NCBI RefSeq assembly: GCF_964204645.1
Contig: NC_134033.1
Coordinates: forward strand, 3,616,131 to 3,680,130
DNA length: 64,000 bases
Reading direction: 5' to 3'
Source of the DNA: Tubulanus polymorphus
Taxonomy: Eukaryota > Animalia > Nemertea
The notes under the pieces were generated by a model, which saw nothing but the letters and a program-made list of their open reading frames with translations, did no database searches and was not told the DNA's origin. Position numbers and translations under genes: made by a program. The stretch's first letter is position 1; each line of letters opens with the position of its first letter. Positions 28,001 through 34,000 of the stretch are shown one piece after another.

Positions 28001-31000
28001 TGATCGAATATCAAGTCATAAATACAACATTATCGTTGTAGAATCAGTACAGTAGAGAGTAAGTATGGTCTATACTTGTAACTTATGTAACTTTTTTTCA
28101 ATAAGCAATGATGATTTTAAAAATCACATCTTAAGAAAACATAGAAATGATCCACATTTCAAAATAACGTGTGATGCCTGTGGTGCCACCTATCATAATT
28201 ATTTTTCATATCGTAGTCATTTTAAACGCCACCATGCCCATAGGGAAGAAGTTGACCATGAACCCGATGACATAGACCTACCAGAACCGCAAAATCTCCA
28301 AATAGGCCTAAATGATGATCCTAGACCTGACTTAGGCCTGGTGGAACATGATATTCAACAAAATCAAAATGAACTCAATGTTGCAGCAGTTGACCAACTG
28401 AAAATGAGTGCTGGGCAATTCATTCTAAAAATGAGAGCTGGCCATAAAATAAGTGCAAGAGCAACCTGTGAGATGCTTGAAACAGTCAGCCAGTTTACTG
28501 AAATTGTTTCTGAGTGTACTCGTGATAATATTCTTAGATTAGTTCCTGGACTGAATGAAGAACAAAAGAATTTGATTACTCATTACTTTGCTGAAAAACA
28601 GGATGTATTTGCTGGGCTTCAAAGTACTTATATGCAGAACAAGTTCTTTAGAGATAATTTCTCTTTGGTTGAACCTGTGGAAATAGTGTTAGGTCATTAT
28701 TTCAAAAAGGTCAAGGTTAAAGGTAGATATATTTTCAAGAAAGTCCCTGCTCTTGGCTATTTTATACCATTATTAGAAACTCTTAAATCAATTTTGAGTA
28801 TACCTCAAGTAAAGAATTGTGCCAATATAAGTCATGCTAGTGAAGATCAATACATGCGAGACATGTGCGATGGTACTTATTTCAAAAACCATCCTCTGTT
28901 CAAAAAAAACCCGAATGCACTTTGCCTTCTTGCATACTGTGATGATTTCGAGCTAGCCAATCCGATTGGAACTCATGCCAAATTGCATAAAATAATCATA
29001 TTCTATGTAGTTGTATGCAACATTCCACCTGAATTACGATCAAAATTGCCAGTAATTCATCTTGTAGCTGTTACACTGAGAAAGTATATTGTTGGTCACA
29101 GGGACAGGCTTCAAAAGCTTCTTAAAAATTTTGTTGATGATCTAAACACTCTCTATGATGGGTACACATTCATCTTACCCTCCGGCATATATCGTACTAA
29201 TGGGACTTTATTGGCATTCACTGGAGATACGCCTGCAGCAAATGAAATTGCTGGCTTTAAAGAAGGGGTTGGTGGAGCCAGCAAGCCTTGCAGACTTTGT
29301 GATATTCATAAGAATGACATGAATGCTATATTCTGTCCCTCTGACTGCATGATGCGAGAAGAAGTTGAACATAGAGAGAGGTGTAATTACCTGAAAGAAC
29401 TTAGTAGGGCTGATAGGCTTCTAATGAGTAGTGAGTATGGGATAAATAATGATTCTGTGTTGCAAGGTATCAATGATTTCCAGATAACGAAGTGTTTTCC
29501 TATGGATGTCATGCATGTACTACTGGAAGGAATTTGCAATTATGAGACCAAATTATGTCTTCGACATATGGTATCTGATAAAAACATGAATGTTAGTGTT
29601 CTAAACAACTGCATAGCAAATTACAGCTATTCTGAACTTGAAATGAAAGATAGACCTCAACCCATAGATAGAAAAACTCTTTTTGGTAATGGAAAACTAA
29701 ATCAAACGTCTGAATCTATGCGGATATTAATGTATCATTTGCCATTCATTTTGAACGCTATGAACATACTAGATGATAGAGATGAGTATTGGAGTAACTG
29801 GATACGTCTTCAAAAGATAACTATTCTGAGTTTATCCCCTATTATATCTGATGAAACTATTGCATTTATAGATATATTGGTTGCAGTACACAACAGAAAA
29901 TTCGTAGAGATTTATCCCGATGAGAGCTATACGCCCAAATTGCACTATATGGTACATTTGGGGGATCAGATGCGAAAATATGGTCCTCTGCGCACACATT
30001 GGTGTATGCGCTTCGAAGGGAAACATGGTTTTTTCAAAAAGATGAAATGGAACAATTTTAAGAATATTGCTCTAGTTATTGCGACAAAGCACCAGCAGTG
30101 GCTTTGTCTTCAGCAACTCGGGACGGATGGGCAAAGATCCATGTGTTTCTTAAATGACGAAGATGACATAAAATTTGGGCACATAATGCATGAAGACGAA
30201 GACCATTTCAATGATATAATGACATATTTAGTACGTGAAACACATAGATTGCAGATAGGTCCTTTGATGATAAGCCCAAAGATCGTCGTACATGGTCATA
30301 TTTACATGCCTGACAACATTCTCCTTTTAGAATTCGATGAAGATGAATATCCCGTATTTTGTAAGATTACTAAGATTGTAGTTGTTCAGGAAGAGAAATA
30401 CTTGCTACTTGATAGGTTTTTAGTCGAGAGGTATGATTACACTCTCAATGCTTATGAGCTTCGAGAGGATCACTCTTGTAGTAGAAATAAGATCTTGTCT
30501 GTTCAGGATCTCCAATTCCCTTGGGTACTGCCCCAAAAATGCTTTGGTTATAAGAGATATGTTTTACTTTGCTATAGTCCTCTCGTAATGTTGTAAACTG
30601 CTGTTGTTTTTATAGATTTTATAGAAGGCTAGGTCACTGGATGTGGTGTGTCTGTCAGAAACTACAGTGGAACCTCGTTACTTCATGAGACCAGAAAATA
30701 TGTTCATTATAACTGATATATTTTGAATCCAGTATGAAAAATTATAGGAGGTCAAATTATCCCATTTTGAACAGTTTGTAATAACCGATAAATCGTTATA
30801 TCTGATGTTATAACGAGGTTCCATGTATATCCAACTATCTGACTACTCCTTTAATGCTAGAATTTTTGTGGAAATATTTCTTATTGCTTAGGTAAACTGT
30901 CCGTTTGAAAAAGCAAGGTTTTCAATCTCACACTGACAGTGTCAGCTTTATTAAAATATGTGTTCGGTCGACAACAAAACCACACTTCATCGGTGCATAA

Positions 31001-34000
31001 ATTCAGCAGGAAACAAAGTTTTCTTGATCGCGTCATCACTAAAAATGTTAAAAGATAAAGGTATGTAAGTCGATATTTGGTATTATGTAGTTCAAGTTCA
31101 AGTTCATGTAAATATACTGGTTTATTTAATCTTGTATAACAATATTTTTGGTTGTTTAGCTACGAAATGGTTATCTTCAAGTGAAGATGATCCACCGTCA
31201 GTGTACACCAGCGATGGAACTGAGATCTTCGACGAAGAGGTGTTTGAGGTGATTTCACAAACTGATACGACTCTCCTCATATTAAAGTCTGGTGAAACTC
31301 TGATCAATTATGGTGAGTATATAGGCGTATATATTCTTAGAAATGGTGAATCATCAAATTATCGTAGTTGTTTTAACTAATTATAATTCAATTATAACTT
31401 TTATTAGACGTCCATAAGAGTACTCTTCAACCTGATTTATCTTCGTCAACTGATACTGACATCAGCTCAGAAAGGTCTGATTTCATTGATTCGGAGGAAT
31501 CGGCATCAATTGTGAGTATATCTTTTATATACTATCAATTATAACAGGGTTCCTACAGCCCCTCAAATCCCTCGAATAACCCTCAAATTTAGAATTGGTC
31601 ATGTAGCAAGCCTGTAAAATCCAATATTTAAAGGAATTACCAAAACTAAGCGCTGATGTGGTGGATAAGCTATCAGCCTCTGCATCAGCTGCTGCCGCCG
31701 TTTGGGATGAATGTGTGACTCAAATGGCATACGGTTTACTCAAGAGACCCGAGGGAATCTCGACATCAAGACAATATACAGAGGCATGCCAAGAACTCAT
31801 AAAAAGATATCCCAATTTGGCCAGAATCTCAGCTGGTAAAGTTACAAAGCCTTGGGTAAGTAATCATTATATGATATTATAATTACATTATATTATATTA
31901 TAACCTTTAACTATTTGCATATTAATCTAAAACTTGGAATTTCAATGAAAAGTGATAGTTCATATCTCAAGTTGGATTCATCGAAGCAAAATCCTGAAAT
32001 GTTTTTAAGGAAAAAGACTAAATACCGGTATATATGTTATAATTTTTAGCCCACTTGGCCGAAGGCCATTCGGTTAGTCCCTGTGGTTGGTTGCACAGTT
32101 TTGATTTAAGTCCAAAAGTTGTCTTAAATTTTAGAAGTGATCTTAGGTTGTTAGATTGGCTATAGAACTTAGTTGGTCTTAAGTCTAAGCCGTGACTATG
32201 CAACCGGCCCTGGGTCTTAGTGTGGTCTGGCGTGCGTGTGTCATATTTCTTGTGAACGCTCTACAGACCACAGTTTTTGGCCAATCGGCTTTAAATTCAC
32301 ATATATTGTGTATGACCAAAACATCTCGGAGGAGTTTTATATTTGTATTAATTGGATCCAAGATGGCTGATTGGCGGCCATCTTGGTTTCTGAAATGTGA
32401 AATGAAATGGTCTATCATATGACCAAACAAGGTCATCATATCATCCAATATGGCCGCCTGGTGACCATCTTGGTTTCTGAAAATGCACAATTTTGATATT
32501 ACCTGATATAATATTCCATGTAGATCTTTCATATTTCATATGAGAATGTGAAATAGAAGGGTCTATCATATGACCAAACTAGGTCTTCTTAGCACCTGTC
32601 CTATTGTGCTTAGATTTTGTTTGATTAAGGTGGCTTTTAAGAAATCGTTAAGTATGAAAGTGAGACACATTCGGCACTACAGAAAGAAGAGAGATAATAC
32701 GTCAGCTAGCAGTAGTTACAGGAAGGCAGTTAAGGTTTCAGGTAATTTTATGAAATAATAGTTTAGTCGTACATGTATGTATTATTAATGAAATATGGTA
32801 TGATATTAAAACAGATGAATCTGTTTTAGCTTGCCGTGGTTTGAGTCGGGAGTCTCCGTCGTCGCCTGTTGGTGGTTTAGACGAAGACCGGAGTTCTTTC
32901 ACAGCTGTTAAAGCGTCAGGTATTTATAAAATGAATAGTTCGTTGTTGTTCCTGATAAAATTCCAATCAAATTACCGCATCTAATTAGATGAGTCTCTTT
33001 TAGGTCGTTGTGGTTTGAGTCGGGAGTCTCCGTCACCTGTTGGTTTTTTAAACGAAGGCTGGAGTTCTTGCGAAGCTGTTAAAGCATCAGGTAGTTATAA
33101 AATGAATAGTTCGTTGTTGTTCCTGATAAAATTCCAATCAAATTACCGCATCTAATTAGATGAGTCTCTTTTAGGTCGTTGTGGTTTGAGTCGGGAGTCT
33201 CGGTCACCTATTGTTTTTTTAAACGAAGACTGGAGTTCTTGCGAAGCTCTTAAATCGTCAGGTATTTATAAAATGAATAGTTCGTTGTTGTTCCTGATAA
33301 AATTCCAATCAAATTACCGCATCTAATTAGATGTGTCTCTTTTAGGTCGTTGTGGTTTGAGTCGGGAGTCTCCGTCACCTGTTGGTTTTTTAAACGAAGG
33401 CTGGAGTTCTTGCGAAGCTGTTAAAGCATCAGGTAGTTATAAAATGAATAGTTCGTTGTTGTTCCTGATAAAATTCCAATCCAATTACCGCATCTAATTA
33501 GATGAGTCTCTTTTAGCTTGCCGTGGTTTGAGTCAGAAGTCTCCGTCACCTGTTGGTTTTTTAAACGAAGACTGGAGTTCTTGCGAAGCTGTTAAAGCGT
33601 CGGGTAGTTATCTGAAATAATGGTTTAGTTGTATATATGATTGACGAAATTCTATTCAGATTATGGTATGATATTAAAACAGACGAGTCTCTTTTAGTTT
33701 GCGGTGCTTTGAGTCAGGAGTCTCCGTCGCCCGTTGGTGTTTTAGCTGAAGACCTGAGTCCTTCTGAAGTCTCAAATAGTGGTAAGAATGATTCCAAAGT
33801 ATATGAAATGTATTAATGTGAATTGAGTTCAGATGCCTCTTTTCTTTAATCTCTTAGACCAAGCTGACCTTGCTATGTTAGGAGAAAAGCGATTGTTGGA
33901 CCGACCAAAGATATTCAAACTGATGAAGGCCACACTAGCGCAGCGTCGACAGGAAATAAGAAATTCAGGCGATATACTTTTCTTCATGCAAAAGTATAAA

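Follow-up and report, generated by a model that had tools for sequence, protein, structure and literature searches.

A predicted CIDE-N domain in the accessory protein of a two-gene CACTA-type transposon from the nemertean Tubulanus polymorphus

The DNA analysed here is a stretch of 64,000 nucleotides from the nemertean Tubulanus polymorphus (NCBI RefSeq assembly GCF_964204645.1, contig NC_134033.1, positions 3,616,131 to 3,680,130 of the forward strand), which we call the window and number from its first letter. It carries a 9,741-bp DNA transposon at 26983-36723 with two genes on the same strand, a transposase and, downstream of it, a multi-exon second gene, ORF2. As judged from sequence, what is new here is a two-gene transposon of the CACTA type whose predicted accessory protein, the ORF2 product, uses a CIDE-N domain. 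In metazoans CIDE-N serves apoptotic DNA fragmentation (DFF40/DFF45 and the Dreps) and lipid-droplet fusion (CIDE-A/B/C), and it is reported to assemble into open-ended head-to-tail filaments (PMC5730196, PMC8647176).

The element and its spliced second gene

The limits of the transposon are sharply defined, with BLAST similarity among its copies stopping exactly at both ends. The 268-Mb genome contains seven occurrences of ORF2 exon 2, all protein-identical; compared with the window copy, three of the six other copies show 100% identity over ~9.7 kb and three show 99.3-99.7%, leaving four identical full-length copies when the window copy is included. The element is young and probably still mobile. 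Its inverted ends open with CACTG, and a 2-bp duplication flanks all seven insertions (TA in four, TG in two and AA in one). The hexamer GAACAY/RTGTTC is concentrated beneath the ends, where 19 of its 25 copies in the element fall within 300 bp of either terminus, at 31.7 per kb versus 0.7 inside. The element thus displays the features by which transposons of the CACTA/Mirage/Chapaev (CMC) group are recognised, namely CACT-type inverted ends with a 2-3 bp target duplication and subterminal arrays of a short motif. The transposase itself passes no Pfam cut-off, its DUF4218 match lying under the threshold at E 0.0066. A phmmer search connects it (E 1e-39 to 1e-64) with homologues of which P0018 and P0021 exceed the Plavaka cut-off and P0017-P0021 match Transposase_21 sub-threshold. 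Given the CACTG inverted ends, the 2-bp duplication, the hexamer arrays and a transposase with Plavaka/Transposase_21 relatives, we place the element in the CMC group, in agreement with an earlier annotation of this DNA made from the letters alone (hereafter the original prediction), which had taken ORF2 for the second gene of a CACTA transposon.

The original prediction had also spliced ORF2 together from 15 exons, with exon 1 joined to exon 2 across 31060/31160, and both proposals were borne out. ORF2 begins at an ATG at 30958. Its first exon, 103 bases long, ends at the donor G/GTATGT (slashes mark exon boundaries), and exon 2 follows the acceptor TTTAG/ and stops before GTGAGT; the codon split between them, G/CT, encodes Ala, and exon-wise translation reproduces the peptide given earlier. 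Contigs of four public runs (X1-X4) were mapped to 30750-36740. An X4 contig of 3,960 nt omits 31061-31159 and 31313-31407, each bounded by GT..AG, whereas X1-X3 contigs continue unspliced through the ORF2 introns. The kinds of run are unrecorded; judged by these spliced and unspliced contigs, X4 behaves as RNA-derived and X1-X3 behave as DNA. Downstream of exon 1, X4 contigs contain 13 joints, with GT..AG at all but one. The exon map derived from the X4 joints and the repeat structure (Table 1) has GT/AG at every junction of its 15 exons, and the phases combine into one uninterrupted reading frame 633 codons long. The peptides of all window exons recur in order in the 633-aa RefSeq protein P0007 (Tubulanus polymorphus), joined by single residues where codons are split, and this protein served as the reference spliced ORF2 protein for domain searches. 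Its cluster, named "uncharacterized" in RefSeq, was reached from the last exon by exhaustive protein search. Within intron 4 (31950-32350), contig depth reaches thousands in all four runs and many contigs end at 32147-32210; this stretch has the appearance of a short repeat of very high copy number nested within the element.

Gene models further connect the two genes. RefSeq models P0001, P0010 and P0011, which derive from two slightly diverged element copies, join transposase residues 1-220 to the ..NKVFLIASS.. segment of ORF2 by way of a donor within the transposase frame (AAAG/GTAGAT) and an acceptor within ORF2 exon 1 (CAG/G). The product predicted by these models is a zinc-finger + CIDE-N + ORF2 protein. 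An X4 contig with ORF2 splices reaches 2,942 nt upstream of 30750, into the transposase region. A consensus donor, GTAAGT, is also found at 28059-28064, immediately before the transposase ATG, and from the sequence a leader could be spliced from it to an acceptor just 5' of the ORF2 ATG (AG at 30938-30939 or 30944-30945).

CIDE-N is the sole Pfam family matched in P0007. In the middle of the gene, each of the six tandem units comprises an exon of 84-90 nt (28-30 codons) and its own intron of 84 nt, or 94 nt before exon 11. The tandem repeat, at 32813-33781, has multiplied exon and intron as one unit, and is spliced in the RNA contigs. The C-terminal module (P0007 residues 406-633, 228 residues) has a distant match to a repeat of protein P0004 from the fish Trachinotus anak (E 1.8e-4) and resembles large unnamed clusters of chordate proteins (Atlas score 0.96); it has the look of an animal domain that is widespread, still uncharacterised and possibly derived from transposons. 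By sequence, ORF2 could not be surveyed across species, because the exhaustive last-exon search gave only one true relative cluster and one fish protein. Likewise, a word-index protein search with P0007, both whole and as residues 1-95, found its own cluster only.

The N-terminal domain of ORF2

The original prediction held that the accessory gene begins with a CIDE-N domain, and profile searches agree. Against Pfam CIDE-N (PF02017), for which the curated gathering cut-off is 23.5 bits, P0007 reaches 31.9 bits (E 1.4e-7, residues 20-81), and 35.8 bits (E 8.5e-9) when only its residues 1-95 are taken. Exon 2 alone yields 22.7 bits (E 1e-4) over profile positions 43-74 of 76, and exon 1 contributes 9-13 bits. 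A phmmer search of P0007:1-95 against all PDB sequences returned four matches, all of them CIDE-N (Drep2, FSP27 twice and CIDE-B), and the best PDB matches of exon 2 alone were Drep2 and CIDE-B. We also built a profile from four transposase-adjacent CIDE-N sequences (window ORF2, a sister family and the loci L030 and L042, described below). Its best 12 matches in the PDB are all CIDE-N chains, led by Drep2 (E 1.4e-8), FSP27 (3.4e-5), CIDE-B and CIDE-A (3e-4) and Drep3 (8e-3), and then CAD, ICAD and Drep4. A joint MAFFT alignment of all pieces (A1) misplaced the N-terminal exons, and those rows were dropped.

Relative to the CIDE-N domains of Drep2, CIDE-A/B/C (FSP27), Drep3, DFF40/CAD and DFF45/ICAD, the ORF2 domain shares Pfam membership, the DGT-x-[IV]-x-D/E-E motif, a basic first half and an N-terminal position. 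By profile score it is closer to Drep2 and CIDE-A/B/C than to CAD/ICAD, and it is ~20-28% identical to the solved domains. What differs is its setting, on the accessory protein of a transposon and, by Pfam, without the DFF40 nuclease, the DFF-C chaperone or the CIDE-C lipid-droplet domain. ORF2 is no orthologue of CAD or ICAD, since Pfam searches show neither PF09230 nor PF09033 after its CIDE-N. On its predicted domain content ORF2 belongs to the CIDE-N domain family; lacking their other domains, it falls outside the protein families DFF40, DFF45 and CIDE.

Structure prediction, by which the original prediction proposed to check the domain, gave weak evidence. An AlphaFold model from a six-row alignment shows the order strand-strand-helix-strand-strand-helix-strand shared with the known CIDE-N domains, at a pLDDT of 58; a single-sequence model of the fusion form (P0001:205-300) was unusable, with a pLDDT of 44. 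Some results weigh against the assignment. The better model is itself poor, and its matches to CIDE-N structures (Foldseek E 0.6-1.7; VIA-align Z 2.2-2.9) are no better than those to unrelated folds. Exon 1 alone matches nothing in Pfam or the PDB, and a three-sequence profile of N-terminal halves has no match in the PDB, both queries being too short to decide. Since the fold matches are not significant, the domain call rests on sequence and not on fold. One could then suppose that the segment is a generic ubiquitin-like sequence matching by chance. Besides the fold searches, the language-model look-alikes point that way, reaching only 0.82-0.83 with the CIDE-N cluster mixed among TDP-43 N-terminal, PB1, Par3 and KHA domains. 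This reading is nonetheless very improbable in our view, given a Pfam score 8-12 bits over the curated cut-off and PDB sequence matches, both the phmmer set and the best 12 of the profile, that are CIDE-N throughout and extend down to E 1.4e-8. The N-terminal ~85 residues of ORF2 are, from their sequence, almost certainly a genuine, divergent CIDE-N.

Table 1. Features of the transposon in the window
Feature	Position	Strand	Basis
Target-site duplication, 2 bp (TA)	26981..26982, again at 36724-36725	.	Same flanking pair on both sides
Whole transposon, one of seven genome copies	26983..36723	+	BLAST against six other copies
5' terminal inverted repeat, 20 bp, CACTGTAAAAACTAAGAACG	26983..27002	+	Reverse complement of 36704-36723; start common to 7/7 copies
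5' subterminal GAACAY / RTGTTC array	26983..27282	+	Motif count
Transposase ORF, 843 aa, N-terminal C2H2 zinc fingers, CMC/CACTA type, upstream of ORF2	28065..30596	+	Weak DUF4218 match; Pfam matches of relatives
Internal splice donor of RefSeq fusion isoforms	28722..28723	+	Gene models; site present in window copy
ORF2 exon 1, N-terminal CIDE-N half (strand 1, strand 2, start of helix 1)	30958..31060	+	Translation; Pfam score gain
Acceptor inside ORF2 exon 1, fusion isoforms	31009..31010	+	Gene models; site present in window copy
Pfam CIDE-N span (P0007 residues 20-81), split by intron 1	31015..31299	+	Pfam and exon map
Intron 1, phase 1, inside CIDE-N	31061..31159	+	GT..AG joint in X4 contig; same position and phase in sister family
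ORF2 exon 2, C-terminal CIDE-N half, DGTEIFDEE acidic motif	31160..31312	+	Pfam CIDE-N; PDB matches
ORF2 exons 3-5 (31408-31511, 31634-31855, 32630-32741): acidic Ser-rich linker, conserved exon 4, very basic exon 5	31408..32741	+	X4 joints, frames, charge
ORF2 exons 6-11 (32830-32919, 33004-33090, 33175-33261, 33346-33432, 33517-33603, 33698-33781): six tandem ~171-bp units	32830..33781	+	X4 joints, frames
ORF2 exons 12-15 (33858-34021, 34105-34224, 34902-34988, 35137-35451): C-terminal module without Pfam family	33858..35451	+	X4 joints, frames, Pfam
3' subterminal RTGTTC array, 12 copies, 57-bp direct repeats among them	36424..36723	+	Motif count
3' terminal inverted repeat, 20 bp	36704..36723	+	Matches 5' end inverted

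CIDE-N beside other transposases and in the host genome

A genome-wide PF02017 exon scan found five more kinds of place besides the seven element copies. At L030 (C5) and L031 (C2), a CIDE-N exon lies just 3' of a decayed transposase on the same strand, and these transposases are only 24-36% identical to the window transposase or to P0016. The L030 exon scores 24.4 bits. At L031, the exon for the N-terminal half scores 18.4 bits alone over profile positions 4-29, and the second half was found with a small custom profile.

A sister family, whose transposase (P0016) is 46% identical to that of the window, was missed by the scan and is present in several copies. Its downstream gene matches ORF2 in five blocks, with exon 4 at 36-40% identity, and keeps both CIDE-N exons with a phase-1 intron at the equal position. 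Synonymous sites are saturated between the two families, so we report pN and pS instead of dN/dS: pN is 0.46-0.48 in the CIDE-N exons and 0.33-0.44 in the other ORF2 exons, and pS is 0.84-0.86. As pN in the CIDE-N exons is like that of the other ORF2 exons and well below the saturated pS, CIDE-N has been retained under constraint across the two families.

A further case comes from an 8-kb ENA contig (L042) encoding transposase P0019. It has no DNA match in the T. polymorphus genome and so belongs to another organism; an ORF starting 112 bases past its transposase stop matches CIDE-N positions 29-75 with 19.1 bits. CIDE-N thus recurs beside transposases of only 28-30% identity, including one from another organism. 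In a transposase tree, which omits the decayed L030 and L031, the window-family fragment P0015 and P0017 (same cluster as P0023), the CIDE-N carriers (window and sister family; P0019) do not form one clade apart from the non-carriers. Since the tree does not unite the carriers, it does not distinguish a single from a multiple gain, and one old gain with losses or several separate gains are both possible.

The genome also holds at least six further families of the same transposase type, each with two to four nearly identical copies whose ORFs are intact and 800-930 aa long (for example C4:3418713, C8:4705526 and C10:4515864), and the superfamily appears active and diverse in T. polymorphus. An ORF downstream of one related transposase (L033) had seemed SAM-like by eye, but Pfam gives nothing for it and that reading was given up.

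The strongest CIDE-N exons of the genome (47.4 bits) lie elsewhere, in a segment of more than 10 kb present in two copies at 98-99% identity (C3:15386400-15406399 and C4:17376400-17396399; L026/L027 and L028/L029). A RING finger exon (zf-C3HC4_3, E 3e-12) follows ~5 kb downstream on the same strand, and no transposase of the window type was found near the locus. This is probably a host gene and may be a CIDE-N plus RING gene. An intron interrupts its CIDE-N close to where the transposon genes have theirs, at profile position 28-30. Exon-wise genome scans gave no signal for DFF40 (PF09230) or DFF-C (PF09033), which does not prove their absence; the worm may be without classical CAD/ICAD. The suggestion in the original prediction that the accessory protein engages host CAD/ICAD is weakened to that extent.

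Proposed role, alternatives and significance

The ORF2 CIDE-N is electrically bipolar, with 7 Lys/Arg versus 2 Asp/Glu in residues 1-40 (net +5) and 1 versus 11 in residues 41-85 (net -10). Its conserved acidic motif residues are D53, E56, D59, E60 and E61 (DGTEIFDEE). Solved CIDE domains are reported to form head-to-tail, open-ended helical filaments that are driven by basic and acidic faces and are sensitive to salt and concentration (PMC8647176, PMC6292858, PMC5730196). Judged by net charge along the sequence, the polarity of the ORF2 domain matches the oppositely charged interfaces of CIDE filament assembly (PMC8647176), which fits a self-assembly reading. We propose that, like CIDE-N elsewhere, it would act as a head-to-tail, charge-driven self-assembly module, the basic N-terminal face of one molecule binding the acidic DGTEIFDEE face of its neighbour. 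Such assembly would multimerise ORF2 together with the zinc-finger-transposase/CIDE-N fusion isoforms on the dense GAACAY arrays under both transposon ends. The resulting polymer might help the transposase by bringing the two ends together or condensing them (synapsis), or it could occupy them as a regulator that competes with full transposase. A polymerising end-binding factor is the most economical reading because it accommodates the bipolar charge, the motif arrays at both ends and isoforms that place a presumed DNA-binding N-terminus before CIDE-N; it is in line with the oligomerisation along subterminal repeats suggested by the original prediction. We judge the chances of self-assembly of this CIDE-N on the element ends to be evenly poised, and the whole account, of a CIDE-N-bearing accessory protein assembling on the ends, to be somewhat favoured.

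The plant CACTA element En/Spm produces a TnpD transposase and an end-binding protein, TnpA, by alternative splicing, and the role proposed for ORF2 would be like that of TnpA, built from a different module. Similarities to En/Spm include CACT.. ends, a short target duplication, motif arrays at both ends and, behind the transposase gene, a second gene of many exons. In addition, the RNA contig with ORF2 splices reaches the transposase region, and in the gene models two products have a 5' part in common. In contrast, ORF2 has no TnpA similarity in Pfam and would multimerise through a CIDE-N, and the element has an animal host and a target duplication of 2 bp. The likeness of ORF2 to TnpA, drawn by analogy, is thus one of putative role and not of family. 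Among CMC transposases, it is relatives of the window transposase that match Plavaka / Transposase_21 (tnp2), whereas the window protein itself passes neither cut-off and has N-terminal C2H2 fingers. The searchable literature describes no CIDE-N accessory gene for Plavaka / Transposase_21 families, and full-text literature searches on CIDE-N with transposons or transposases returned no paper describing such a gene. One paper on the Hydra genome names CIDE-N as one of the domains that expanded along with transposase domains and draws no link (PMC7642931).

Several points count against end assembly. The fusion isoforms are gene models only, with their donor at 28722 lying upstream of the mapped contig range. 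Assembly of the ORF2 CIDE-N is argued from other CIDE-N domains, and binding of ORF2 to DNA or to the repeats is putative. Furthermore, no CIDE-N exon was seen downstream of the related transposases L033, Nematostella L041, L043 and L036-L040 (five more families of this genome), so CIDE-N is not essential to the superfamily. The CIDE-N exons might instead be a passenger, a captured host fragment with no role in the transposon life cycle. DNA transposons, CACTA included, do capture host exons; the intron at profile position 28-30 in both the C3/C4 locus and ORF2 is consistent with capture of genomic DNA, and the CIDE-N-carrying lineages do not form one clade. However, CIDE-N opens the frame of a spliced, expressed and intact gene and recurs beside the more distant transposases noted above; in the sister family it has persisted despite a transposase identity of only 46%, and pN lies far under the saturated pS. 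We find a passenger origin without function improbable.

A heterotypic role, in which the ORF2 CIDE-N binds host CIDE-N proteins (CAD/ICAD-like, or the product of the C3/C4 gene) and so blunts or exploits the DNA-fragmentation or damage response to excision, is unlikely but carries more weight. Pairing of unlike CIDE-N domains is known for DFF40 with DFF45 and for acidic with basic DREP surfaces (PMC5730196, PMC8647176), and the genome has at least one strong non-transposon CIDE-N locus, that at C3/C4 with its RING exon downstream. Besides the lack of a DFF40 or DFF-C signal in the exon-wise scans, this reading must contend with an ORF2 without an ICAD-like C domain, whose CIDE-N half is only ~28% identical to that at C3/C4, and with no link between the host CIDE-N gene and transposition. 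Self-assembly on the element ends remains the reading we prefer.

Elsewhere in the window, two adjoining 188-nt inverted-repeat pairs (39591-39964 and 50214-50588), 94-97% complementary, enclose ~10 kb that may be another mobile element, and a low-complexity perfect palindrome of ~200 bases lies at 63652-63869.

More broadly, the recurrence of CIDE-N raises the question of whether mobile elements move this domain around in animals. That CIDE-N is an old, recurrent module of a metazoan CMC transposon clade and not a one-off capture, with the domain exchanged between transposons and animal DFF/CIDE proteins, strikes us as a long shot. If it were true, host CIDE-N could have been domesticated from such an accessory gene, or transposons could have spread CIDE-N between lineages, and the Hydra expansion of CIDE-N alongside transposase domains (PMC7642931) would be the same phenomenon. 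Irrespective of its history, the transposon accessory protein would be a third, unrelated context for CIDE-N, conserved, expressed and found with several transposase lineages in at least two organisms, and counts of CIDE-N genes in invertebrates may be inflated by transposon genes. Overall, CIDE-N suggests a concrete, testable route by which an animal CACTA-type element might build a multimeric complex on its ends, and this young element, with its four identical copies, would offer a system for testing end-complex assembly.

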